A stretch of 64,000 bases of DNA from Eukaryota sp. TZLM1-RC (lineage: Eukaryota > Protista > Metamonada: BaSk clade). This document shows, in pieces, positions 1,509 to 33,775 of this stretch. The stretch lies in contig JAUPSS010000008.1 of NCBI GenBank assembly GCA_040285825.1, forward strand, positions 558,001-622,000, given 5' to 3'. The translations under genes were made by a program, and so were the position numbers. The first letter of the stretch is position 1, and each line of letters begins with the position of its first letter. The notes beneath the pieces were generated by a model. That model was not told the DNA's origin. It searched no databases and was given only the letters and a program-made list of their open reading frames with translations.

Positions 1509-2393
1509 CTAATCAGCATCTAGTCGGAAAGCCAACTTCTTTCCACGGTGACCTTTCAACAGATCATTCGCCACATACCTTACCAGATTAGAGCCTTGAA
1601 TTCCAATGTCTTCTTTAATCAAATTAACAGCTTCAACACGTGCAAACCGAATTGTCTTGGCTCCTTCAGCAGTAGCATTAGCATTAATGATATAAGAGTC
1701 AGCCAAAGCTCTTGCATTTCGGACGCGTACATCAGCTGCCCTAATGGTTTGATCCAATTCTGTATCCTTTTCAGTGAGTCTATTATCTCTTTGGCTTCTG
1801 GCAACATCAATGTCTCTTTCTGCAGCCTGTCTGTTGCTAATAGCATCTTCAAACACAGACGGTAAATCAATGTCATGTAGTTGGAAAGCAGTGACTCTGG
1901 TCGAAATTGCTTGAAGTTTATCACGAAGAGTATCTTCCATATGGTTCTGTACAATAGACCGTTCAGAAAAGAATTGAATAGCAGTGTAATTGCTGGCGAC
2001 ATCGCGGCAAATAGAACGGATGAGACAACGTATAACTGGTCTGTATTCGGTAATGAATCTGTCAAAAATGTAGTTAATGTCTTCAATGGCAAGTCTGTAC
2101 TGGAGCTCCACCTCCATGGTGACTTCTAAGCCATCATATGAGCGGAGATCTAGAGGGTTGTTCTCTTCTTTGGTAAAATCTTCAGTGATTTCAGTAGTGG
2201 GATATTTGTAAAAGGAAAAGCCCGGTCCAAGAAAGTATCGACCTGATACCAGTGGTACTTCACGAACCTTCCCGGTCCATCCATTGAGAACAAGAGCAAC
2301 ATGAGCAGGTTCAACAGTATAAAAGGAAGACATAAGAATGACTCCTAACACAACGATTATAAAGATAACAACATGAGCTACTGGACGCCCCAT
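1509..2393 (-). CDS. SPFH/Band-7/prohibitin-domain membrane protein
   Basis: N-terminal TM helix, SFYTVEPAHVAL, SYDGLEVTMEVELQYR, IDLPSVFEDAI, C-terminal coiled coil. Confidence 0.9.
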   Translation of the reverse strand: MGRPVAHVVIFIIVVLGVILMSSFYTVEPAHVALVLNGWTGKVREVPLVSGRYFLGPGFSFYKYPTTEITEDFTKEENNPLDLRSYDGLEVTMEVELQYRLAIEDINYIFDRFITEYRPVIRCLIRSICRDVASNYTAIQFFSERSIVQNHMEDTLRDKLQAISTRVTAFQLHDIDLPSVFEDAISNRQAAERDIDVARSQRDNRLTEKDTELDQTIRAADVRVRNARALADSYIINANATAEGAKTIRFARVEAVNLIKEDIGIQGSNLVRYVANDLLKGHRGKKLAFRLDAD

Positions 2394-2475
2394 TCTTACT
2401 GATATTATCTATAACAATGAAATAAGTGACCTTTTTACAGTGACCTAAGATATTGTAAGTTGAACTGTAAGTCCA
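2386..2475 (-). ncRNA. Putative Fanzor right end / omegaRNA (family 1) abutting the SPFH ATG
   Basis: Minus strand GTAAAAAGGTCACTTATTTCATTGTTATAGATAATATCAGTAAGA-ATG matches 33165-33211 and the minus strand of 20716-20763; directly downstream of a Fanzor ORF. Confidence 0.7.
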
Positions 2476-5150
2476 AATCCAAATGCATTTACCAAACCTA
2501 CATTGGAAATCCATACTTCATTTCAACTCCAGGCACTATTGAGCTGCCACATAGTTTAAGATGGACTGATATTTTCTTCTACAGAGATCTTCTTGACTAC
2601 TCTCTTTTTAGTTCCTCCCTGTCTTCCTTTAGCACCCGATGAGGATGTGCTTGTTTCAGGAACTTGCGATGGACAGTTTCTTCTGTTGTGGTCTTCTCCG
2701 CGACATAAACCACATCTTCTCGGTTTTTTGTCCTTCTCAGCAGTCTTCTTTTTCTGATCTCTCTGCGAAGTAGATGATCCATTTTCGAATTCTTTTGTTT
2801 GAGTTTTTGGTCTCTCGAAAATGGATGGTTCCAGTGAATCCTTCTGTTCACGCCATTCTTGTTGAAAATCTCTTTTTCTAGTAGGATTGTTTTGATTAAA
2901 TAAATCAATTTCTTGTTTTAATTTCTTTGCTTTTCTTTTTAGTTGTCGTTTGCCCTTAGGACCTAACACTTTAATACTAGAATCGTTGACACATTCTCCA
3001 AAATTTCCCTTGGCAGCACAACTGGAACAAGATTTACTCGTTCTATATTCATCAACTAGGAAAATTCGATAACCAAATCTTCTTAATAGTTTGCGGATTT
3101 CGGTTCCTCTAGTGGTTGTCCCTTTTCCCTTCCTTGTGTTTCCATTCGAGCTCCAGTCACCATAACCAATAACTACGTCTTCAGGGGAGCCAAAGGTCAA
3201 TTTGAATCTTTTCAACATGTTTCTTCACTTCTTTGATTATTCGAATACGTTTGAAATTTTCTTTTTCTAATCCATATTTCTTGGTAAAAAATATTCATAT
3301 GAACATTGTATCGCTCAAATTCCTTGATGTAATCATCAAAATGTTGACTGAAAAAAGATCTTTGTTGTCTGTTTGATACAGATAAAGAACATTGATTTAA
3401 AATATCCTGACATAAGTAATCACTATCAGGTAATTGTACTTTCCAATTTTTTTCAATTTTCTTTTTCCGTTCAACGATATTTGGTACTTTTTCTGTCAAA
3501 GTGTTATATTTGACCGTTTTCCACCAGTGTGTGGGTTTAAGTTGTGCATAATCAGAGTCAGACTTGGAATAGATTGATATATTTTGTAATTGTTTCTCTC
3601 TTCTTTTAATGCCTTTGCTTTTTTGCTCCTGATTTCTGGTAGTTTTCTTTTTTTATAAAACACATTTTGTGAAATTTGTTCTGGGGTAATAGTTACAGCA
3701 GGATTTGGAGAAACACAGTGCATTAAATCGTACTCGTTAGGGTCAATATCAACTATTCTTTTATCTTTTAACTTCAACTTTTCGTCATTTTCAGCAGACA
3801 AGGACTGTATGCATCGCTCTGGGTGCGCTTAAGTCTTGGAAATAGAATTTTTAAAAACATTTCCATTTTCATCAGCCATGTCTTTACGAATTAAGACCAC
3901 TGAACAAGCAATCCCGTCTGTTACAATTGAGGAGAATTTTAATTGAAAGCAACCTTTAGTCTCCCGTTTGTAGGAATCTAATACCTTATCAGTTAGTATT
4001 TCGGTAAAAACTGATTTTCTAATTTCATTTGCTCTCCCTTTGAACTTGCCAAATCTTTCATTGAGCCAATGACTATAGAGTCTTATATGCCGTGGAATCA
4101 ATGTAGTTGTCAATGGAAAAGGATTACTGACTGACAAAGGTTTGCCATCCTGGGAACAAAATGATTGAATGGTTCTGTTAATACTTAAAGCTTGAGAGAG
4201 AAATTTCAATGGCTTGGCTGATTGAGTATAATAAAGATTTTTACCCTTAATAAAAGTGGGAATTAAACAATGTTTCATTTTAGCAAAAAACTTTAAAGTC
4301 AAGTCTGACTGGGGAAAGGGAAAAACAATGTGATCATTGATAAAAAGTTTATCAAAGTTTCCACTGATAATGGCTTCCCTGAGTTTGTTGAAATTAGTTA
4401 ATAACTCTTTCTTCAGATGTTGTTCCTAAATTTGTTCTAGTCTGAACTTCTTCAAGGGGATAATGTTTAACCAGCGCAAAACGTATTCATGAAAGTGTTT
4501 GCTGAGATTATTGCCATAATTAATGGCAAGTTGTTTGGCTGTGTAGTGCGAAACTCGATTCATTGATGTATTACCTGGAAATTGAGTCCTTCTTTGAATA
4601 AGCTCATTATCAAGATTTTGTAGAATTGGATAAAAGAAATTCAGGTAGTTAAAACTAATTTTTTGTTTCAAAGTGTAATTCGAAATACCCTTATCTTCAA
4701 TTACTTTTTCGCTTCAATCTTTGATAGTTCCAGTTCTGAATTATTTGCGTTTGACTTCGCGACAAACATCCGCCTTAAAACTAATTTATTTGATGCTAAT
4801 TTAATTGATTCGGCTTAAATCTGGTAGTTGAATTGAGAAATCATTAAAATCGAAATACGCATCATAGTCGTATTCATGCATTGAATGCGCAGTTTCGATT
4901 GGGTAAAATGTTTCTTCAATCTGAAGGGCATCAAAATCATAACCATTCATCAAATCAATCTCTAACTTCCTTTACTCAGTATTTTCATATTGACACAGTA
5001 AGAAAAATTTAAAGAAGGATGTTCCTCTGATAGTAGCTAATTGGTTATTGTGAACACACTTACAAGTCAAAGTACGCTTGTCATGGTCGTTGATTGTTTT
5101 ATTTATTCTTCTTTTTACAACTGTTATTGTAGGTTTTTCGACAATTAATT
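2440..5150 (-). pseudogene. Fanzor1 (TnpB-like RuvC nuclease) pseudogene, frameshifted, with an inserted CCHC knuckle
   Basis: Fragments in the expected order: TVVKRRINKTI..IRGTSFFKFFLL; NYGNNLSKHFHEYVLRWLN; PRHIRL; FSSIVTDGIACSV; RuvC-I IVDIDPNEYDL; RKRKFQTYSNNQRSE; VVIGYGDWS; FLVDEYRTSKSCSSC; degenerate RuvC-III (CIWIWTYSSTYNIL). Confidence 0.9.
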
Positions 5151-9109: not shown

Positions 9110-9835
9110 ATTGCGCACTTATAACTTGCAATATTCTGTTTTAACCAAAAAAAGGCAGGGATTCTTGTTATATTTGAGGTGATTTGAAAATGTCACAATT
9201 GATTCTTTGATTACCATAACATTAGTAATTAAGCTAAACCAAAATGTGTTCATCTACATCCAAGGGAACACCAATAAGTTGAAAGCTAATTTCAGAATTG
9301 GTTATTCTATACTATCCAGTAATAAAATCAAACTTTTTATCATCAATCAAAGTCTTGGACTGATTACCTAGCAATACTAATGCTGATCCCAATTTATCAG
9401 TAGTCCTGGACTTTACTACTGTTCATCCCTGCAACAATTATGTATTTTTCAGTCAATGAAATGAGATTTGTATCATTTAGAAAACACTGAAAACGCTAAA
9501 GTTGAGAAGTATAAGGCTTAATTATTAGTTAAGGTTTGAATTGTCGTCCAATGTAGTTCAAACGGAAAACTATCACTAGAAGCAGGAACTTCTTTGAATG
9601 ATTTCCAAAAAATGGTTCAAGAAACAACAATGAAAAGATTTGCTAATTTTTTCATGGCGCTCTCGAATTCAATTTGCCATAATTAATAGATTGCCTCGGT
9701 GTTTCAATCGAACTAGAGAAGTTTTAGCGAGACATCAAGCACATTGAAATTTTGTAGAGGAAATCTTGGTTCAATGATTTTCGTCCCATTAGTTATGAAT
9801 TTATTTTGTTAAGTGTAAAAGTTTATTAAATATAA
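9110..9835 (+). mobile_element. Decayed RLE non-LTR fragments, including the 3' end of the ...EEILVQ* family
   Basis: 9556-9830 is homologous to 25600-25870. Confidence 0.7.
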
Positions 9836-10451: not shown

Positions 10452-11261
10452 ATGTTCTGCTCTATCAAGTTAATATTCAGGTGGGATATCAATTACTTAG
10501 CCCTTTGTTCGGTCTTCTTGTTGCATTTCTTGGGAACCACCCTCCATGTGTATCTTGGGGAAACAACTCCTTCTATTTTCTTTGTTCAACTCGCATTTTC
10601 TTTGGTTTTTTTCTGTCTTTGTAGTCTTACTTCCGTCCGTTCGGAACCTGCTGATGTTGAATCTTGTCCCTTATCAACTGGAGCTCCTCCTCTAAGGTTT
10701 TGCAATAAGTGTCAACACTACCAAGTGTACAGATGCAAGCATTGTATCCATTGTAACAAGTGTATAGACAAGTATGACCATCATTGCATGTGGCTAGGTA
10801 CTTGCATTGGAAGAAGAAATCATCTTTATTTTCTAGTTTTTCTGGTGTTTGAGTTCCTTATACTAAAAGAATTTGTTAAGAGATGTTTGGTGAGTGCTCT
10901 AGAAGGACCTGATTTATTTAATTTCTCGTTTCGTTTTCTTAATTTTATTCTATATCTTGGTTTTTTGTTGGTTTGTATTATTTCATCATTTTTGCTCATG
11001 ATGGTAGCTGGCCTTTTTTTCTTCAATCTTTTTCTGATTGTCACCAATCAAACCTCATGGGAATTATTTAAGCGTGATAGAATCACTTATCTGAAGGATT
11101 TAGCTTTTTCTGTCCGGCCCTTTGATCGTGGGGTTTTAAGAAATGTTCTAGAATTCTTAGTGGTTAATTTTAAAAGAAAAATTTGGGATATAACAAATTA
11201 TGATTCACTAAAGAAAAAGGATGATGTAGATGAAGATTCTAGTTGGTTTTCTTGGTTTTAA
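10452..11261 (+). CDS. DHHC palmitoyltransferase
   Basis: CNKC..RCKHCIHCNKCIDKYDHHCMWLGTCIGRRNH, TNQTSWE, PFDRGVLRN. Confidence 0.95.
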   Translation: MFCSIKLIFRWDINYLALCSVFLLHFLGTTLHVYLGETTPSIFFVQLAFSLVFFCLCSLTSVRSEPADVESCPLSTGAPPLRFCNKCQHYQVYRCKHCIHCNKCIDKYDHHCMWLGTCIGRRNHLYFLVFLVFEFLILKEFVKRCLVSALEGPDLFNFSFRFLNFILYLGFLLVCIISSFLLMMVAGLFFFNLFLIVTNQTSWELFKRDRITYLKDLAFSVRPFDRGVLRNVLEFLVVNFKRKIWDITNYDSLKKKDDVDEDSSWFSWF

Positions 11262-12369: not shown

Positions 12370-13480
12370 ACTTATAACTAATGGGAAAAAATTAATTGAA
12401 CCAAGATTTCCTCTACAAAATCTTGATCTGCTTGCTGTCTAGCTAAAGCTTCTGTTATTCGATTGAAAAACCTAGGTAATCTATTAATAATGGCAAATTG
12501 AATCCGAGGACGCCATAAAAATTATCAAATCTTTTCATTGTTTTTTCTTGAACCATTTTTTTGAAGTCATTCAAAAAAGTTTCTGCTTCTACTGATAGTC
12601 TTCCGTTTATCGAAAATGAGAAAGCAATAAAAACAAGCTGTGTATTTCTACTAGCATTAGCTTCTTCAATATCTTTATCATATTTTCTATGTTTTTCCTT
12701 TGCTTTAAAATCAAGAGCACTTACAGGATTAAGCTTTCTCCTTTGAACCAAAATGTCATTTGCAACATTAAAGGAGACAAAGTCAACACTAGCTTCAGAG
12801 TTCTCAATCCAATCACAGTATATATCACCTCTATCATCAGAACCAAAATTATTCAATGACAATGTTTCCTTCAGCGGAGGCTCTTTGATACACGATATTC
12901 TTGCAGTTTGTGCCATATTGAAAACAGTGTCTCCAGCAGCATCATGTAATGAAGAACGATCAGTTATCAATTTAGAACAATTCAGAGCATGGCGTAAATT
13001 GAGCTGAGGTGAATTCGAACAAATACATTTTTCTTTTGATAATAATTGATTAATGGCATTATTCAAATATAATCTCATTTTTGTTACAAATGCTTCATTA
13101 ATAGCACACAAGCCAAATCTTGGTGGTACAATGGTTACAAAAAATGAAGAATCTGATGACTTATTTTCACCAACACCCCTTTCCAATAACAATGAGTGAA
13201 GATCTTGATTTAAAACAGCCGAGCTGCATATATTTTCATAAAGATCATTTTCATACATTCCAGTCAATCGTTTCTGTAATGTTCGAAGAGTGTATTTTAA
13301 ATTTAAAAGATTCTTTTCTGGAATATTACCATTGAATGATTGGGGAAAGCATCGACTCCATTTTTCTACATTAATTTTTGAAATTTCTTTATTTAATGCA
13401 AAAATAGTCGAACTTTTTGTTGTTATCAATAAATCTTCTCAATCTGCAAATCTTTCAGAAAACTTCAGATTGAAATTCTA
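12370..13480 (-). mobile_element. RLE non-LTR retrotransposon (...EEILVQ* family), 5'-truncated
   Basis: CCHC CICSNSPQLNLRHALNC, RSSLHDA, EP, RGD..D, KAKEKHRKYD: zinc finger plus PD-(D/E)xK-type restriction-like endonuclease. Confidence 0.9.
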
Positions 13481-18849: not shown

Positions 18850-19985
18850 ATTAGAATTTCAATCTGAAGTTTTCTGAAAGATTTGCAGATTGAGAAGATT
18901 TATTGATAACAACAAAAAGTTCGACTATTTTTGCATTAAATAAAGAAATTTCAAAAATTAATGTAGAAAAATGGAGTCGATGCTTTCCCCAATCATTCAA
19001 TGGTAATATTCCAGAAAAGAATCTTTTAAATTTAAAATACACTCTTCGAACATTACAGAAACGATTGACTGGAATGTATGAAAATGATTTTTATGAAAAT
19101 ATATGCAGCTCGGCTGTTTTAAATCAAGATCTTCACTCATTGTTATTGGAAAGGGGTGTTGGTGAAAATAAGTCATCAGATTCTTCATTTTTTGTAACCA
19201 TTGTACCACCAAGATTTGGCTTGTGTGCTATTAATGAAGCATTTGTAACAAAAATGAGATTATATTTGAATAATGCCATTAATCAATTATTATCAAAAGA
19301 AAAATGTATTTGTTCGAATTCACCTCAGCTCAATTTACGCCATGCTCTGAATTGTTCTAAATTGATAACTTATCGTTCTTCATTACATGATGCTGTTAGA
19401 GACACTGTTTTCGATATGGCACGAACTGCAAGAATCTCGTGTATTAAAGAGCGTCTGCTGAAAGAAACATTGTCATTGAATAATTTTTGTTCTGATGACA
19501 GAAGTGATGTATACTGTGATTGGATTGAGAACTCTGAAGCTTTTGTTGACTTTGTCTCCTGCAATGTTGCAAATGACACTTTGGTTTAAAGAAGAAAACT
19601 TAATCCTGTAAGCGCTCTTGAATTTAAAGCTAAAGAAAAACATAGAAAATATGACAAAGATAACGAAGAAGCCAATGCTGATAGAAATAGACCACTTGTT
19701 TCTATTGCTTTCCCATTTTCTATAAACGGAAGACTATCAGTTGAAGCAGGAACTTTTTTGAATGATTTCCAAAAAATGGTTCAAGAAAAAACAATGAAAA
19801 GATTTGATAGTTTTTTATGGCGCTCTCGAATTCCATATGCCATTATTAATAGATTACTTCGGTTTTTCAATCGATTAGAGAAGCTTTAGCTAGACAGCAA
19901 GTAGATCAAGATTTTGTAGAGGAAATTTTGGTTCAATGAATTTCGTCCCATTAGTTATGATTTTATTTTGTTAAGTGTGTAAGTT
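18850..19985 (+). mobile_element. RLE non-LTR retrotransposon (...EEILVQ* family), chimeric
   Basis: 5' half mirrors 12965-13480; 3' half diverges from 12370-12965. Confidence 0.9.
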
Positions 19986-20349
19986 GTACCTGATCTTCAC
20001 TTCAGAAGTAAACTAAATCCACCAGATGCTCTCAAAATCTAGGTTTATTTTGTTTAGTGTTAAAGTTGAATATTAAAATTGGATCCAATATCAAAATTTG
20101 GTCGAATATCAATAGCAGAGTTTTTTATCAAACATAATCCGTTGACCTCACACTCACTGGAATCTGAAAATAAGATCATTGTTTTACAATTTATTTTCCA
20201 CAAAAACCAAAAAAAATTTGAACAGTACTTTATCAACTATGGAAAATATAGCCAAAAGTGAAAACAATATAAACAAAGCAGTAAAACTACAACGCTTAAT
20301 AAGATAGTGTACAAAAGTATAGATTAATGAAAATAACTAAATTAATAAT

Positions 20350-20718
20350 CTATTTAGAGAGTTTAAACGTAGGAATGCTGAGAGGCTCTTGACCGAGAAC
20401 ATCCCTTTTTAAAGGAACATCTGGTATTTCAGGCAAAACAAGGTCCTTCAAGACTTCAATCTCTGGTGTAATGATGTCCACTGGAGGCAAAGGTATGACA
20501 TAATCACCGTTGGATTGAGGAACAGGCTCCGGACATGAAACAGGTGAAGAATGGTCATGGTGAGGGTTAGTTAGTGCGGAAGAGGCGTGTATTGCGTTTC
20601 GAACAGCTGTATCATCTTCATTCATTGCAACAGCTAGTTGGGAAGTCCATAGTGATGTAAGGGAAAAGTCATGTGTATCAAAACAAGCAGTGTGGGGGCT
20701 AAGACGATCGACACCCAT
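20350..20718 (-). CDS. Hypothetical protein (122 aa)
   Basis: Clean ATG ORF, higher GC than its flanks, no recognised domain. Confidence 0.6.
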   Translation of the reverse strand: MGVDRLSPHTACFDTHDFSLTSLWTSQLAVAMNEDDTAVRNAIHASSALTNPHHDHSSPVSCPEPVPQSNGDYVIPLPPVDIITPEIEVLKDLVLPEIPDVPLKRDVLGQEPLSIPTFKLSK

Positions 20719-20800
20719 TCTTATAGATATTGTCTATTACAATGAAATAAGTGTCCTTTTTACACCAACGCAGAGGGACTGAGTTTTTAAGTGGAAGACT
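20710..20800 (-). ncRNA. Putative Fanzor right end / omegaRNA (family 1) abutting the ATG of the 122-aa gene
   Basis: About 90 nt similar to 33125-33216; GACACTTATTT can pair with GAATGGGTGTC, which contains the ATG. Confidence 0.75.
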
Positions 20801-20819
20801 TTCACCCTCAAAGTTTAAC

Positions 20820-21555
20820 CATTATATTTATTAAATTGGAACAATCAAATACACAACTAAAGCTCCACAACCTCAAAACCTGCATCTCCCACATCGAAAC
20901 AGTTAATTACTACAGATTCAGAAAATTTCCCAAAAGAAGAAAGTGAGTCAGAAATTAGTTTCACTACTCCCTTGTAAATGAAAATACAATCCTGTTTTGC
21001 CAGTAAACTCGATGGAAAATTCTGTCAGTCCTTTCCTTTAAAACTTCATTATAATCCTCGAGGAAAGCCATAGCAGCCTTACCTAAAGAACCAAGCAAAG
21101 AAAAAACAAAGGGACATAAATTATACTAGGTATGACAATTTTCATTGACAGAAGAAATAGGTTTCGCGTATTGAGCAATTTTGTAATGTTATTCAAAAAG
21201 AAGAGGGATATTGACATAAGAATTAATGAATGTTCATTAAAAGAATTACAAGGGTCAACAGACATGGCATTTAAAATGGTGAAACTTCCATTTAAGCCAG
21301 GAACAAACATCTCACCCCCTGTCAGAATCAACAAAGCTCTATTAAAGCGTGTACTGTCAATATTGGGGTTTTCACGAATTTGACAAAGATTTGGTCCCTG
21401 ACATTATTACGTACTTTACATCTAAATGTAATAAAATGTTTACAGTTAAGATGATCAAAATCAAGATTTTGTAGAGGAAATCTTGGTTTAATGATAGTCG
21501 TCCCATTAGTTATGATTTAATTTAATCAAGTGTGCAAATTCAATAAATTAATAAG
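20820..21555. mobile_element. Two RLE non-LTR fragments (minus-strand ...VEL* copy, plus-strand 3' tip) inserted between a Fanzor ORF and its right end
   Basis: 20850-21455 is homologous to 61419-62070; 21457-21550 is homologous to 25785-25870. Confidence 0.85.
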
Positions 21556-21579
21556 ATAGTTAAGATGATGAGTAAACAA

Positions 21580-24089: not shown

Positions 24090-25875
24090 GCAATAAAACA
24101 GAAGAGTTAGTAAACAGATGCGAAGTTTTGGTAAATCATTAAATCTATTTTTGGACATAAACAAATTGAATAATTTTTAACAATTCAATATTAGTTGATC
24201 ACTATTAATGCTATTGTGAAAAAAGCAACTGTATGTTTTAAAGAATTATTTACCAAAATTGGCATCCGACTTAACTTACTCAAATGTTTTGTTATCGAAT
24301 TCTGCAGTTTCTACAATAGTTGATGGTATTGAAATTTAAGTTAAATTACATTCAATTGATGCTATCCGTCATTTGGGTTCTTTTTTAGGAAATAATGAAG
24401 AAATTACCAAAGAATTGTTTCAAAAGTTGAACTCAATTTCCGATAAAATTGACCGAATGATGACTTTGGATATACAGAAACATATCAAATTTATCATTAT
24501 AAAACTGTGTTTTAGTTCCAACTTCAATCATATATTTCGATCTACAAATCCTCTCGTCACTAGGCCTTTGGCTCAAAAGTTTAATGAGTTGAGTGCAAAA
24601 GTTTTGTCACAATTACTATGATGTAAAATGTTCCAAATTCCAGACCATGCTTATCTTAGTCCATATTATGGCGGTTTAGGTTGGACGAAGGCTTCTATTC
24701 TCACTTCGTGTGCTTTTATTGGTGGATGCAGAAATAGAGTCTCTGAGTTTTCTGAAAGAATTGCCGATTGGGAAGATTTATTAATGACAAAGCAAAGTTC
24801 CACTGTTTTTGCATTAAATGAAGAAATTTCAAAAATTGATGTAGAAAAATGGAGTCGATGTTTTCCCCAATCATTCACTGGCAATATTTCAGAAAAGAAT
24901 CTTTTAAATTTAAAATACACTCTTCGAACATTACAGAAACGATTGACTGGAATGTATGAAAATGATCTTTATAATAATATATGCAGCTCGGCTGTTTTAA
25001 ATCAAGATCTTCACTCATTGTTATTGGAAAAGGGTGTTTGTGAAACCAAGTCATCAGATTCTTCACTTTTTGTAACCATTGTATCACGAAGATTTGAATT
25101 GCGTGCCACTAATGAAACATTTGTAACAAAAATGAGATCATATTTGAATGTCCCCATTAATCAATTATTATCAAAAGAAAAATGTATTTGTTCGAATTCA
25201 CCTCAACTCACTTTGCGCCATGTTCTGAATTGTTCTAAATTGATAACTTATCGTTCTTCATTACATGATGCTGTTAGACAGACTGTTTTCAATATGGCAC
25301 AAACTGCAAGGATATCGTGTATCAAAGAGCCCCTGCTGAAGGAAACACTTTCTCTGAATAATTTTGGATCTGATGATAGAGGTGATGTATACTGTGATTG
25401 GATTGATAATTCTGAAGCTATTGTTGACTTTGTCCCATGTAATGTTGCAAATGATACTTTGGTTCACAGAAGAAAACTTAATCCTGTGGCTGCTCTGGAT
25501 TTTAAAGCAAAAGAGAAACATAGAAAATATGATAAAGATATTGAGGAGGCTAATGTCAATAGAAATACACAGCTGGTTTTTATTGCTTTCCCATTTTCGA
25601 TAAACGGAAGACTATCAGTAGAAGCAGAAACTTTTTTGAATGATTTCCAAAAAATGGTTCAAGGAAAAACAACGAAAAGACTTGATATTTTTTTATGGCG
25701 TTCTCGGATTCAATTTGTCATTATTAATAAATTACCTCGGTTTTTCAATCGGATAAGAGAAGCTTTAGCTAGACAGCAAGCAGATCAAGATTATGTAGAG
25801 GAAATCTTGGTTCAATGATTTTCGTCCCATTAGTTATGAGTTTATTTTCTTAAGTGTGCAAGTTCAATAAATATT
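24090..25875 (+). mobile_element. Longest RLE non-LTR retrotransposon copy (end of RT, GGLG, CCHC, RLE)
   Basis: IGIRLNLLKC, RHLGSFLG, SPYYGGLG, CICSNSPQLTLRHVLNC, RGD, KEKHRKYD, AATAAA at the 3' end. Confidence 0.92.
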
Positions 25876-27129: not shown

Positions 27130-27714
27130 ATATATTTAGAAAACTTAAAATACATCAGGTTAACATTAAGACTGATTCAGAAGCAATCTTATATACAATA
27201 TAGAATGGACTAGAAACAAAATAGGGTGACTGCAAAAGAATATATATTGATAACTCTGATATTAATCCTTCTGTCAAAAAATTGCCCTTGCTGCTACTAC
27301 TTCAGGTAAGTCTTAATTATTCAATTCTTCTGCAGATTTACATACTGGATTAATTCATTCAATGAAACTTTAAAGGGATAAATGAGTTCATTTCAGGTAC
27401 CATCAAAATCAACAAAGTTTTCATTATAAAAGTACCAATTGTAAAAAAATAAGGAATAGTGTTCGGAAGACACACATTTCACAGTAACTAGGTCTACTGG
27501 AAGGGTAATTGATCCATCAACTATGAATTACCCCAAGCACAACAACAAAGGATGGATTTAAACAGCAGTGTAATTGATCAAATGACTTAGAGAACGATTA
27601 GTTTATTAAGAGGAAACGTACCTCAAAGAATTAATCCTTGCTCTTTAAAATTGGAAAACAACCTTCCACATCCGTATTGAATTGTTATAGACAATATCTT
27701 TAACATGAGTGCTA
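27130..27714 (+). pseudogene. Decayed, internally deleted Fanzor relic with retained right-end tip
   Basis: 27140-27635 aligns with 31910-32440 (e.g. caacaacaaaggatggatttaaacagcagt); 27681-27714 is identical to 33185-33218. Confidence 0.85.
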
Positions 27715-28524
27715 TAATATATTGACAAGTGCAAAATTTGATAAATAAGCTCATTATTTTCACTACATGTCAGACACACCCCCTGGTCCAAATAAAATTC
27801 AGAATTATATGGATTCGCTGCTGAGTGAAACCATCCAGGAGCAAGCTTGCATTGAGCCCTACTGGGAGCTCATTTCCAGCCCTCCTGAGATTCCACCTTC
27901 ACAGGTGAGTTCTTGTTCAACCAAATGTAACAAGGGAACTTTTTCTCATGAAGACTCTCCTTCCCATTTGGTTGAAAATAGACTACTTGGTCAGATTGTC
28001 TCTTCCTCTTTTTTAATTGAGAAGGGTCGATGTGTCCAAGTAGTCCATCATGAAGTTTTTAAAAATTGTTTTTTAATTAATTATTCCACATTTTTGATTA
28101 ATAAACATTTTTTAAATCCTTCAAGAAAACACACTATCTATGAATTTGCTGGTCGTGTCTGGGGCACGAACCTGGAAGCTGTTTGTGTTTCACACATCAG
28201 TCTTTCCACCCACAGCCTCTTTATAGAAAAGAGCAAGTCATTTTGTGTTTATTTTGGAAAGATTGATGATCCATCTGATAAAATCTTTTTTAATTTTTTT
28301 ATTAAAAATTATATAAATTTAATTCCTTTTTATAATAACAATATATATTTTAAAAAAATTAATTTATCAGGTGGAGGGCAACAAAGTGATGATTTCAAAG
28401 ACAGGTGGTTAGATGATGAACAAATCACTGATTCGATCAACAACTTTATCAATCAGTCATCAACTCCACTGTCACATCACAAAATACTTGTTTGGTCCAT
28501 CGCATCAGCCCTATTGTTTTTTAG

Positions 28525-29352: not shown

Positions 29353-31038
29353 TTAGGGGATTTGTTCAAGAGGATTTTTGCTCACAATTTATCAATTCTG
29401 ACGATGGAGAAAATACATTGATTCTTCTACCCTATAATGATGCATTTCATCAATCAAATTTGATTGCATCGGTTGACGGACAATTTACCATTGGGCAACA
29501 TTGGGTACTTGTTGCATTTTGGATCAAATCCAGAACAGTAAAAGCTTTTCTTTTTGATAGTCTTCGTCATAATGAAGAACAACATCAAAAAATTAATTCA
29601 GTAATTTTTGAAAACTTGGAATCAATATCAGTCAGAATTTATCAGAATTTTTTCAATCTAATTTGTATGATTGTGGAATATTCACCATATTGTTTGCAAA
29701 AAAGAATGATCAATTTGTTTTTGTCAAATCAGCTCAATTCAATTGATTCAGCTCATGTTAAACATTTTGTCAATCAAGACAAAAGTTGTTTTTATAGCTG
29801 TGTTGACAATGAACGAAAATCATTTGAGACAAAGAAATGCTCCTCTGTACAAAAAACCATCAGAAAAAGACGAGCTGATGTATTGAAAAGACCTTGGAAA
29901 CGTTTAAAAACACTTTTCAATGAGAATCCACTGACTCAATTTAAATACCCTTTAGTGACATTATCAAATGTCAAAACACAATTTATTCTCAAAATTCTAC
30001 ATTTTGATATTGAAACTTTGGTGTTGGGTAAAAAGCTCAGTGATGAGGATGAAATAATTGTCATTGCTGCAAGAGAACATTCCATCTCTTACTGTCAATC
30101 TACAAGAAAGATTGTTGCAAATTCTGTTTCTCATATTTTTACTCGAGAACAGATTGAACTAAATCTTTGTTTTTGTGATCTTGTAGAAAAATCAACAAGC
30201 AGAAATGAACATTATTGCAAAGTTGATGATAAAGATATCACTTTATATCATCATTCCTCTGAAAAAGAATTGCTGAGTTCATTTGAAAAATTATTAGAAA
30301 CTTATAATCCTCATATAATATGTGGTTTTAATATTCTCAATTTTGACATCCCACATATTATGAAACGTTCTGAAAATGAGGACTTTTTTAAGGGCGAAAT
30401 CGGTGCTACTGAATGGGTTCAATTCTATAACTCAAATTTAATAGAATTGAATCATAAACACTTGAACCCCTGAATTGCTGGTCGATTTGTTGTTGATACT
30501 TGTAGTATTTACACAAATTATTACCAACCACGCAAACTAAACACAGTTTCTAAAATTTTATTAGGGGAAAGTAAAATTGACCTTGATCCTCAATATATTG
30601 CAAAGTATTGGAAGGTTCATGAAGATGATCCCTTCTCAGATTTTTCCTTATCCCAAAGAAGAACTGCAGTTGTAGTTTATTGTTTAAGGGATACAGATTT
30701 AACCATGAAATTATTTAATTTCTTTAACAATGACCAATTCATGGAAACTGTTAAACATAAACCTTATGATGGTTATAAAGACAGTCTAAAAAATGTCATC
30801 AGAGATCCGAAAATGATTGACGTGATCGATGAGGCAGTAATTAGGTGTCAGGAAATTTCTATTGTTGGTATAGAATTCATTTGTGGTTATTATTTGCATC
30901 TTTTTGACTTGAACCCAAATGCTATTTTACCAAAAATTGAAACCCAATTATTTCGTGACGCTTTTCTTGTGGTCACGTCCCAAAGCGATGAGGAAAGTTC
31001 CCTTAACGCAAACACAAAAACAGCTTTGCAAAATTCTC

Positions 31039-31408
31039 GTTGTGCCCCGTTGTTGGAATTCTATCACCAACACTTTAAAGAAAAACTTGTTCCAAAAGTT
31101 TTATCAAAAAAAGGAATCAGTAATATTTTGTATTACACAATTGACAAACTGATTGTGAATTTCAAAAATAACATCCAAGAGCATTACTTTGATTACTTGG
31201 ATCGGTTTGTCGATGTTTTTTATGTTGTGCCCCGTTGTTGGAATTCTATCACCAACACTTTAAAGAAAAACTTGTTCCAAAAGTTTTATCAAAAAAAGGA
31301 ATCAGTAATATTTTGTATTACACAATTGACAAACTGATTGTGAATTTCAAAAATAACATCCAAGAGCATTACTTTGATTACTTGGATCGGTTTGTCGATG
31401 TTTTTTAT
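31039..31408 (+). repeat. 185-bp tandem duplication inside the Fanzor ORF (frameshifting)
   Basis: 31039-31223 is repeated at 31224-31408. Confidence 0.95.
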
Positions 31409-33124
31409 GATGTTAAGAGAAACAACAATGTTCTGAAAAACAGGATAAGAAAAACTTCTCATCATTCATCAGCAAAGTTAAATCCCTCCTTCTAGAAGTA
31501 TGTAGAGATATTGATGGCGAAACTTCTACAATGAGAAACAAAGTCTCATCAATTACTTCGCTTTTCATTAATGACTAGATCCCTCTTTTACTTCCCAGTA
31601 ATTCTAAAAGGGAAAAGTATTCAAAATTGATTTTTCGTCAAAATCAAATTATTATTTGAGGGCAATGTTTTATATTAATAATTATTTAGAAGATGAGGAG
31701 AGTAAACTCTTTCATGCTCTGTCTTTGAATAATTCTTGTATTCCCTCGTATATCAGAATTGACAAGACAAGTTTATTGGACATGTTCTTTGTCCAATTCA
31801 AAGGCATTCTTGGTCCAAGGTCGTCTTATCAATGCAATAATCAAGCTGCTGATTTGGTTTTATGGGACACCATTTTAAAAATGGACGAGATTAAAAACAC
31901 TAAACTTTATGCAGAAAATTCCAAGTACATCATGTCTAGTATTGAGACTGATGGAATAGCAGTATCATTCATTCAATCTAGAATGGACTTGAAAAAGTAC
32001 AAAGTAACTGCAAAAGAATTAAAAGATAAAGAAAAATATATTGATGACCGCAGCATCAATCCTTCTGAATTTCAAGATATGACCCTTGCTGCTGCTGATC
32101 CAGGAAAATCTGATCTACTCTATTTTTCTGCCAATTTAGCTACTGGAATGACTCATTCAAAAAAAACCTGAGAGAGATAAATATGTTCATTTCAGGTACA
32201 CTCAAAATCAACAAAGATTTGATTCGAAAAGTTCCAAATTCAAAAGAATAAGAGACAGCATACGTAATGACACTCTTATCACAATAAGTGACTCCACTGG
32301 TAGAGTGATTGATCTATCCAATTATGAACCATCTGAAGAACAACAACAAAGGATGGATTTAAACAGCAGTATAATTAATCAAATGACTGAAAGAACAATT
32401 AGTTTATTAAGAGGTGAAGTACCTCAAGAAATCAATATTCCCCACGAAATTGATTACTCATTAAATTTGAGAAATAATGATCACACGACTAATTCTGAAA
32501 CAAATTGGGAAGCAACTTTATCCCAATTCAATTCCAAAAGCTGCAGGTTTGATAGATATATGGAGTATATCAAACAAAAGAATTTTGTGAATAGTATTGT
32601 TGGTCAAGTCTATCATCAAAAAATATTTAGGAAACTAAGATGGTGGACTGAGATTAATCGCACAAGATCTGAGGCAAAAATGATTCAGAGATTCAAATCA
32701 GTAATTGGTGATCCCAGCCAAGTAGTTATTGGAATCGGAGACTGGGAACAACGAAAACACATAAAATTCAAAGAACCTACCAAGGGAAAAGGTTTGAGAA
32801 TTCTATTTAAAAAGGCTGGTTATAAAGTCTTTTTGATTGATGAGTTTCGAACCAGTTGCTGTTGTTTCAACTGTAAGAAAGCGGAGAAGACAGTTGAAAC
32901 ATTCCAGTGGTGCAAAAATCCTTAGCCATGGAAGAGGCATGAGGTGTCTATTCGTCACGGGCTTACCATGTGTACATAATGCGAAAGTTTGTGGAATAGA
33001 GATCGAAATGCTTCGCTGAATATGTTGGCAGTTTTGAAAGCACATGTAAATGGTGGAGATAGACAGGAATACCTGCAGAGAGTCAAGGTTGACAGTGGTT
33101 CAAAGAAAAAGGTATTGAGAAGAA

Positions 33125-33218
33125 AATCTTCCACTTCCCAAAAACTCAGTCCCTCTACATCGGCGTAAAAAGGACACTTATTTCATTGTTATAGACAATA
33201 TCTTTAACATGAGTGCTA
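33125..33218 (+). ncRNA. Putative Fanzor omegaRNA / right end (family 1), overlapping the Fanzor stop and the HD-gene ATG
   Basis: Conserved with 20710-20800 and 2386-2445; predicted stems GTCC/GGAC, ATTGT/ACAAT, CACTTA/TGAGTG. Confidence 0.75.
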
Positions 33219-33775
33219 ACTTAAGTGCAATCATCTCATTTCTTTCACAAGTAGGAACATTGAAAAGGGTAAAACGAACAGGTTGGCTTTTAAGTGGGAT
33301 CAGCTCCTCACAAACGGAAAGCGTTGCTGATCATTGTTTTAGAATGAGTCTGATGGCTCTATCTCTTGGTCACCTGTTTCCTTCCATCGATCTTTCACGA
33401 GCTATCACAATGTCTATTGTCCATGACATTGCCGAATCTATAATTGGTGACATTACCCCTGGTTCGCCTGAATCTGTTGACAAGAGAGCCAGGGAACTTG
33501 CAGCATTACAAACCTTAATAATTGATCTTCCTCTCAACCTACAACAACTGATTCGGGATTTATTTTGTGAATATGAAGATCAAAATACTCCTACCAGTCG
33601 ATTCTGTAAGGCTATGGATAAACTTGAGATGGTTTTGCAAGCTGCTGAGTACGAAAACAGCCAAGACTTGCCCCTTCCCCAGTTCTTTGACTCGGTGAAA
33701 GAGCACGTGAAAGAGTGGGATGACGAAACTATTTCTAATGTGTTTGATATTATTATAAAAATGAGGAAGTTTTGA
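33209..33775 (+). CDS. HDDC2: HD-domain 5'-deoxynucleotidase, HDDC2-like
   Basis: LKRVKRTGW, ESVADHCFRM, VHDIAESIIGDITP, EYE, DKLEMVLQAAEYE. Confidence 0.93.
   Translation: MSANLSAIISFLSQVGTLKRVKRTGWLLSGISSSQTESVADHCFRMSLMALSLGHLFPSIDLSRAITMSIVHDIAESIIGDITPGSPESVDKRARELAALQTLIIDLPLNLQQLIRDLFCEYEDQNTPTSRFCKAMDKLEMVLQAAEYENSQDLPLPQFFDSVKEHVKEWDDETISNVFDIIIKMRKF

Follow-up and report, generated by a model that had tools for sequence, protein, structure and literature searches.

The omegaRNAs of characterized Fanzors overlap the end of the nuclease ORF and the right end of the transposon, and the 3′ flank of that end serves as the guide (Saito et al. 2023, PMC10432273). These RNAs are predicted to form stem-loops that take in the flank, and the nuclease SpuFz1 cuts 16–21 nt from the TAM (PMC10432273). 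A second system of interest is IS608 of the IS200/IS605 family, in which cleavage and target tetranucleotides are read by pairing with bases 5′ of the foot of a hairpin, and which carries subterminal imperfect palindromes (PMC3201880, PMC5934647).

We examined a window of 64,000 nt from Eukaryota sp. TZLM1-RC (JAUPSS010000008.1:558001–622000, assembly GCA_040285825.1). The stretch 33125–33218 of this window resembles the Fanzor/TnpB (OMEGA) systems in that a TnpB-type nuclease with a TNB zinc ribbon is encoded directly upstream, and in that a conserved noncoding right end overlaps the stop codon of the nuclease and is followed at once by host-specific sequence. Unlike in the characterized Fanzors, every right end here is joined to the start codon of a host gene, with the last 4–5 bases (AATGR) common to element and gene. 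Further differences are that the nuclease genes examined here are pseudogenes, that no inverted-repeat left end was found, and that the system is known here from DNA alone. On the explanation that we prefer, and which we hold to be somewhat probable, a decayed family-1 Fanzor (a eukaryotic TnpB) has its right end at 33125–33218, and this end is joined base-precisely to the start of an HD-hydrolase gene. The parts of this right end (copy A, belonging to element A) are as follows.

33122–33168, plus strand: C-terminal coding tail of the decayed family-1 Fanzor; the translation ends ...KLSPSTSA*, with the stop codon TAA at 33166–33168.
33165–33177, plus strand: nearly invariant 13-nt block GTAAAAAGGACAC, which includes the Fanzor stop; mean pairwise identity 0.98, compared to 0.90 for the coding tail.
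33175–33180, plus strand: CACTTA, the 5′ arm of a stem proposed by a first-pass annotation of the window and said to pair with TGAGTG at 33210–33215.
33183–33195, plus strand: 5′ arm of the terminal palindrome, (T)CATTGTTATAGA; almost invariant in 18–20 copies, pairing with spacer and ATG in RNA and DNA folds.
33196–33200, plus strand: palindrome loop CAATA (CATCA or CATAA elsewhere), where the right end varies most.
33201–33212, plus strand: 3′ arm of the palindrome, consisting of TC, the spacer TTTAAC, the host ATG (33209–33211) and the +4 base A (33212), as established by ATG-anchored pair counts.
33209–33775, plus strand: HD-domain (HDDC2-like) host gene, annotated in GCA_040285825.1 (Pfam HD_3, E = 4.5e-37).

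The coding tail of element A is common to 14 A-type copies. A 206-aa fragment of the Fanzor retrieved 57 homologues with PF07282 (Cas12f1-like TNB), this domain was detected in the paralogue P0001 (E = 4e-6), and the C-terminal motif ...C..C...WNRDRNAS is readable in the Fanzor translation. The element therefore encodes a TnpB-type RuvC/zinc-ribbon nuclease, of which the window copy itself is a pseudogene. Its reading frame contains TGA at 32169–32171, TAG at 32923–32925 and TAA at 32968–32970. Since the T and A at 32923–4 are A and G in paralogue contigs, which yields a sense codon, these stops mark a pseudogene and give no evidence of a variant genetic code. The same ORF contains a perfect 185-nt tandem duplication (31039–31223 and 31224–31408). 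Element A also includes an ORF (29418–30473) with a DNA polymerase B exonuclease domain (E = 1e-14); a 787-aa gene at another locus of this genome (L012) combines the same domain with DUF8286.

The 13-nt block GTAAAAAGGACAC recurs in a second right end of the window (copy C, below), where it follows the tail of another Fanzor family. The stop codon lies within the invariant GTAAAAAGG (33165–33173), and the TAAA that overlaps it presumably resembles the Trichomonas polyadenylation signal; part of the block may be a 3′-end processing signal. From the Fanzor stop (33166–68) to the ATG of the HD gene (33209) there are 40 nt. The HD protein aligns with human HDDC2 from residue 7 onward, and since the N-terminus is variable, this comparison says nothing on the position of the start.

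Shuffled sequences never contain the 28-nt core of the stretch, of which the window has three occurrences. Each of the three cores is located 6–7 nt 5′ of an ATG: that of the HD gene at 33209, that of a 122-aa ORF at 20718 (minus strand) and that of an SPFH gene at 2393 (minus strand). The two additional right ends are:

20715–20763, minus strand: right end of copy B (block, palindrome and spacer TATAAGA), fused to the ATG (20718–20716) of the 122-aa ORF.
2390–2438, minus strand: right end of copy C (spacer AGTAAGA), fused to the ATG (2393–2391) of the SPFH/Band-7 gene.

Copies A and B have about 85 nt in common, which is the Fanzor tail, and copy C has the final 38 nt only. Upstream of copy C, an ORF on the minus strand (2556–3218) with a weak Cas12f-like TNB match and a CCHC knuckle represents another Fanzor-like family. 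That two Fanzor families have the same 38-nt end suggests that ends were exchanged, or are specially conserved, between families.

In copy B, a 775-nt insertion separates the Fanzor body (22786–21579) from the tail. Two other loci show insertions at a nearly identical place (equivalent to 33106–33130 of the window), so that three independent insertions split the Fanzor tail 75–100 nt 5′ of a host ATG, with short overlaps. The inserts are 10962–12799 in L002 (1.84 kb), 11184–13663 in L006 (2.5 kb, with an RVT_1 gene) and 20804–21578 in the window (775 nt). The region just 5′ of gene starts may be an insertion hot spot. The window also contains a second repeat family (9743–9831, 19905–19993, 21460–21548 and 25784–25872), likely the right end of yet another Fanzor family. 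No member of this family adjoins an ATG in the window (the GtrA gene begins about 140 nt past 25872), and the family provided no independent replication.

We extended the comparison within this genome by another 11 loci of 20 kb each, which were found by a Fanzor fragment search of a protein collection and which together with the window make 12 loci. A motif scan and an nhmmer profile detected 20 strong right-end copies in these loci (18 independent copies and 2 local duplicates) as well as 2 decayed ones. This sample of about 20 copies was reached through Fanzor protein fragments and is thus not a genome census. The controls were 83 other annotated gene starts from the same loci. A metagenome scan for the right-end motif and an Rfam search with the right-end stretch returned no match. 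Three small runs of one study, presumably of DNA and available as short contigs, showed over 5,001 bases a sharp drop of repeat depth near 33.2 kb, and a paralogue junction in these contigs reads ...TTTAAGAATGAATG.

All 20 strong matches have an ATG within 6–9 nt of the loop-proximal ATC. Annotated gene starts on the same strand hold 18 of the 18 independent copies, and the 2 decayed copies are also found at same-strand gene starts. Genes for XRN1, Tctex-1, a metallophosphatase, an acyltransferase, a GHMP kinase and UQ_con are among those docked in this way. The right-end block was also considered as a general leader motif of host genes and rejected: a right-end-like leader precedes only 1 of the 83 control genes.

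Pairwise comparison of the copies locates the boundary between element and host. Identity is 0.98 in the block, 0.89–0.92 in the core and 0.69 in the spacer, and falls to 0.27 (random) over host positions +4 to +18. In the 20 copies the flanks diverge at a boundary between +4 and +5, as is characteristic of the conserved right end of a Fanzor/TnpB (OMEGA) element. Position +4 is a purine in 20 of 20 copies compared to 43 of the 83 controls (p = 1.7e-5). This bias holds in the 15 copies that the first-pass annotation had not seen (15/15, p = 2.8e-4) and in a comparison with 25 Pfam-bearing host genes (p about 3e-3). An A is found at –1 in 19 of 20 copies and in 38 of 83 controls. Inside each spacer subtype the +4 base is identical (15/15 concordant pairs, permutation p = 0.002), and positions +5 to +8 show no linkage to the subtype (p = 0.7–1.0). 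Different genes can have the same spacer: TGTTTCA was seen five times and TGTAACTA three times. Since identical spacers precede different genes, the spacer is borne by the element. The +4 rule and the subtype linkage, with none at +5 to +8, place the junction within the common A-ATG-R and leave host-only sequence from +5 onward. By these sequence comparisons, the element-linked sequence reaches one base past the ATG and ends between +4 and +5. Spacer subtype TGTTTCA was seen with three loop variants, so that the linkage between subtype and +4 could reflect recombination or target classes instead of inheritance.

Alternatively, the element could end at –1, and everything from the ATG onward would represent the first guide bases of an omegaRNA used for homing. 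The complementarity of CAT and ATG would then be a lucky coincidence at the level of the family, and the +4 purine would be a motif read by a protein or a bias to well-expressed genes. This proposal draws on the characterized Fanzors, in which the 3′ flank of the right end is the guide and SpuFz1 cleaves 16–21 nt from the TAM (PMC10432273). It is also consistent with the unconstrained host sequence beyond +4, and with two loci at which a younger element is preceded by a second copy of the right end and of exactly 15–16 nt of its flank (the ATG among them), which gives the impression that this unit or cut distance mattered. On the other hand, a +4 base that tracks the spacer subtype of the element (p = 0.002) is unexpected for a purely host base. 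In addition, pairing predicts what is seen opposite +4, where a T takes A or G and a C takes G only (2/2); the omegaRNA is, moreover, a putative one here. We consider it unlikely that the flank acts as guide only.

The proteins of the docked genes begin with native sequence. Residues 1–100 of the XRN1 homologue align one to one with solved XRN1 structures, and since the N-terminus MGVPKFFR is universal among these proteins, its first codons are host sequence and were not donated by the element. At locus L012, the annotated start of the GHMP-kinase gene is at 10611; translation from the Fanzor-docked ATG at 10530 lengthens the protein by 27 residues, among them SPARVNLIGEHTDY, which we take to be the galactokinase signature. 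Because the docked ATG restores this motif, the gene model of L012 looks 5′-truncated.

The right end might also have been exapted by the host. In this scenario, selection on the host keeps the palindrome as a core promoter or transcription factor site (inverted CATTGTT/AACAATG) together with the leader, and the exact docking results from survivorship of a few out of numerous random insertions instead of targeting. Solo tails of about 100 nt do persist in front of intact housekeeping genes, and the right end, above all its block, is much better conserved than the broken Fanzor ORFs. With only 40 nt from the Fanzor stop to the host ATG, any host promoter must be located in element DNA. Survivorship, however, predicts neither base-precise junctions nor the +4 purine rule nor the linkage to spacer subtypes, and as a full account of the docking this scenario seems to us improbable.

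The right end closes with an imperfect palindrome of 12-nt arms (CATTGTTATAGA and TCTGTAACAATG) around the variable 5-nt loop. The 3′ arm is made up of the 6–9-nt spacer and finishes with A-ATG-R; that of copy A is degenerate, being one base shorter and having T in place of G. MAFFT leaves the variable spacer ungapped and RNAalifold is almost uninformative on such alignments, and pairing was therefore counted by a script that anchors each copy at its ATG. In ViennaRNA base-pair probabilities, the host ATG is opposite the CAT of TTTCATTG in 15 of 18 copies, mostly with P near 1 (G(+3) with the C of CAT). DNA folds gave CATT:AATG in 6 of the 6 copies tested. The ATG-anchored counts for 16 copies found –1 paired in 15, the three bases of the ATG in 16, 15 and 16, and +4 in 16; pairing declines to 11 at +5 and 3 at +6, and is random from there on. 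The inner 8 bp of the palindrome are paired in 84.7% of cells, compared to 25–51% when the arms are slid.

The predicted hairpins are modest. The best palindrome (L006) reaches 12–14 bp with a DNA fold z of –4.5, and the three degenerate palindromes of the window give DNA fold z values of –1.8 to –2.5. The base opposite +4 is C in two copies, both of which have G at +4, and T occurs with A or G; on these small numbers the pairing at +4 looks wobble-tolerant. Covariation in the inner helix is 0.054 compared to 0.051 in shuffled alignments, with no compensatory changes. Since the 5′ arm is nearly fixed and the 3′ arm varies (AAC/AAG/TTC, indels of 0–2 nt) without compensation, structural selection on the palindrome is undemonstrated. 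Given that all copies descend from a single family, the complementarity of CAT and ATG is in effect one evolutionary observation.

The first-pass annotation had arrived at a different structure. It proposed that the last stem of a family-1 omegaRNA pairs CACTTATTT with the host ATG and the first 2–3 codons, that this stem is kept by covariation, and that the element donates a start codon with a codon or two and gates host translation. The complementarities on which this proposal was built are literally present in copies A, B and C: CACTTA/TGAGTG at 33175–80/33210–15 (6–7 bp), GACACTTATTT/GAATGGGTGTC in copy B (11 bp with 3 G-U pairs) and CTTATTT/GAATGGG in copy C (7 bp). The genes begin with ATGAGTG, ATGGGTG and ATGGGGC, as the annotation gave them, and ATGRGTG opens 3 of 16 docked genes but only 1 of the 83 control genes. 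A 12-bp helix in this register appears again at XRN1, where it consists of the codons ATG GGT GTT CCT. These codons encode the start of the universal MGVPKFF and were not donated.

The independent copies argue against this structure. The proposed register is preferred in only 2 of 18 copies (copy B and XRN1), and in copy A, where CACTTA/TGAGTG is the minimum free energy fold, the ensemble nevertheless favors CAT:ATG (~0.6). The conserved terminal stem thus does hold the start codon, as had been claimed, but the partner of the ATG is the CAT at the foot of the 12-bp palindrome and not TTAT or CACTTA. In the three window copies, the proposed stem extends past the ATG by 4, 6 and 2 bases; an extension of at least 2 bases was found in 2 of the 15 unseen copies and in 11 of 83 controls (Fisher p = 1.0). 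True host sequences gave ensemble energies that did not improve on those of control hosts (mean percentile 0.40, p = 0.22; 0.55 compared to hosts matched for the +4 purine). The stems are AU/GU-rich and weak; stretches of 66–101 nt had folding z values of –1.1 to –2.0, with one copy at +0.1, and the RNAalifold consensus was –0.63 kcal/mol.

The small ATTGT/AYAAT hairpin, which was said to be kept in all three copies, is intact in the window but loses 2 of its 5 pairs, uncompensated, in 9 of 18 aligned copies through a change from CAATATC to CATCATC or CATAATC. It is paired in 75.6% of cells. Nowhere in the right end is variation higher than at the two loop bases concerned, the same ones that this hairpin requires to be paired; their variation breaks the small hairpin and leaves the long palindrome intact. 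A compensatory swap had been read from an upstream stem of copies A and C, but the two upstream sequences are non-homologous, being tails of different Fanzor families, and this stem shows no covariation across 16 A-type copies. Covariation of the proposed helices amounts to 0.065 compared to 0.061 in shuffled alignments, with 138 of 500 shuffles as high, and none of the helices exceeds the shuffled or slid controls. Covariation read by eye from three copies in one window thus fails in an independent sample, and the proposed pairings and covariation are mostly chance.

As to which bases the element owns, the idea that it brings the ATG and a codon or two retains limited support for the ATG and +4, which are element-linked. 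It does not extend to +5 to +8, which are unlinked to the element, to the host sequence with its identity of 0.27, or to the native MGVPKFFR of XRN1. The opposite expectation, that conservation ends before the ATG with random sequence downstream, describes the copies from +5 onward but not at +4, which the linkage still reaches. The predicted probability of a paired ATG is 0.79 behind the element and 0.51 in native leaders, which does no more than suggest a hairpin that may sequester the start codon and gate translation. Taken as a whole, the first-pass structure is largely refuted at the level of sequence, and we judge it very improbable.

One further copy of the palindrome is located upstream of element A:

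27675–27714, plus strand: upstream duplicate of palindrome, spacer and ATGAGTGCTA; 40 nt at 95% identity to 33179–33218, 34 of them perfect, ending 16 nt past the loop-proximal ATC.

This duplicate closes an older, diverged Fanzor tail (27138–27698). A similar arrangement was observed at L002, where 9670–9707 duplicates 12872–12909 upstream of a younger Fanzor insertion. At both loci the duplicate consists of the palindrome, the spacer and the first 8–10 nt of the host gene, and reaches 15–16 nt past the loop-proximal ATC. This length equals a typical guide or cut distance of a Fanzor, and the duplicates might record self-directed cleavage followed by repair, with two cases only to go by.

Of the three left ends that could be compared, one is truncated. 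In L004 and L005, homology begins about 22 nt before TGACAAG, and the flanks have no motif in common. No terminal inverted repeat was seen between left and right ends, and no hairpin comparable to that of the right end was identified in these few left ends. An IS608-like insertion 3′ of the host ATGR, with a copy at the left end, was rejected, as the left flanks of the two usable copies (L004 and L005) have no ATG. The 8-mer AAGTGCAA is found twice, at 27727–27734 (element A, truncated left end) and at 33223–33230 (HD gene, +15 to +22); it may be microhomology of the insertion event, or chance.

Several features of the right end recall IS200/IS605 elements, with which TnpB is ancestrally associated: the asymmetry of the element, the subterminal or terminal hairpin, and a junction site of 4–5 nt that is complementary to the 5′ foot of the hairpin (here TCATT:AATGR). 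Unlike in IS608, where the target tetranucleotide is at the left end, the complementary site extends the right-end hairpin, in which T may be opposite either A or G. Pfam scans of the element ORFs detected DNA_pol_B_exo1 and TNB only, and no Y1 HUH transposase (TnpA); the ORFs are degraded, so this absence is no proof. Helitrons end with a hairpin 10–12 nt before a CTRR terminus and insert between A and T, and some of them are reported to carry Fanzor1. The elements described here share with Helitrons the asymmetric ends and the position of the hairpin, some 10 nt before the 3′ junction, and differ in the junction motif, AATGR. A Helitron origin was rejected: the spacers end with AAGA, AACA, TTCA or ACTA, CTRR is possible only in the 3–4 copies ending with ACTA/ACTGA, and the element ORFs have no Rep/helicase match in Pfam. 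Elements that integrate into tRNA genes and similar sites carry a copy of the end of the target gene, which integration restores. They have in common with the present case a short identical core at the junction and a host gene that stays intact. Here, unlike in those elements, the core is 4–5 nt long and at the 5′ end (the start codon) of many different protein-coding genes, and no recombinase was identified. A search of the literature found no transposon described with an end joined base-precisely to start codons.

The explanation that we prefer combines three steps. The palindrome would be the cis-acting end of the element, as a DNA or RNA hairpin. Integration would occur via an overlap of 4–5 nt (AATGR) with native gene starts, such that the element replaces the leader of the gene and the protein remains unaltered. 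The surviving ends, which are often solo, would be kept because they now supply a leader or promoter. We regard this combination as somewhat more probable than not, and short of secure. An overlap of 4–5 nt cannot by itself explain why the element is located solely at true starts, and additional targeting or strong survivorship is needed. The host flank from +5 would, by analogy with the characterized Fanzors, be the guide part of a putative omegaRNA and not its scaffold. The U opposite +4, which takes A or G, raises the possibility that the overlap is read by RNA-type pairing. In a more detailed and more tentative version, which may be true but which we would sooner doubt than endorse, a Fanzor-bearing element that ends in its own A-ATG-R hairpin would integrate by the 4–5-nt overlap at native starts, possibly via RNA-type pairing, and swap promoter and leader of the gene; the flank from +5 on would act as guide, and self-directed cuts about 16 nt into it would explain the duplicates.

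If the AATGR overlap is the mode of integration, it would represent a new target rule for an element with an RNA-guided nuclease. The host bases from +5 to about +20 are concrete guide candidates and, together with a defined hairpin, provide an entry to the biology of metamonad Fanzors. If our explanation is true, these elements would offer a route for mobile DNA to take over housekeeping promoters in a compact genome.
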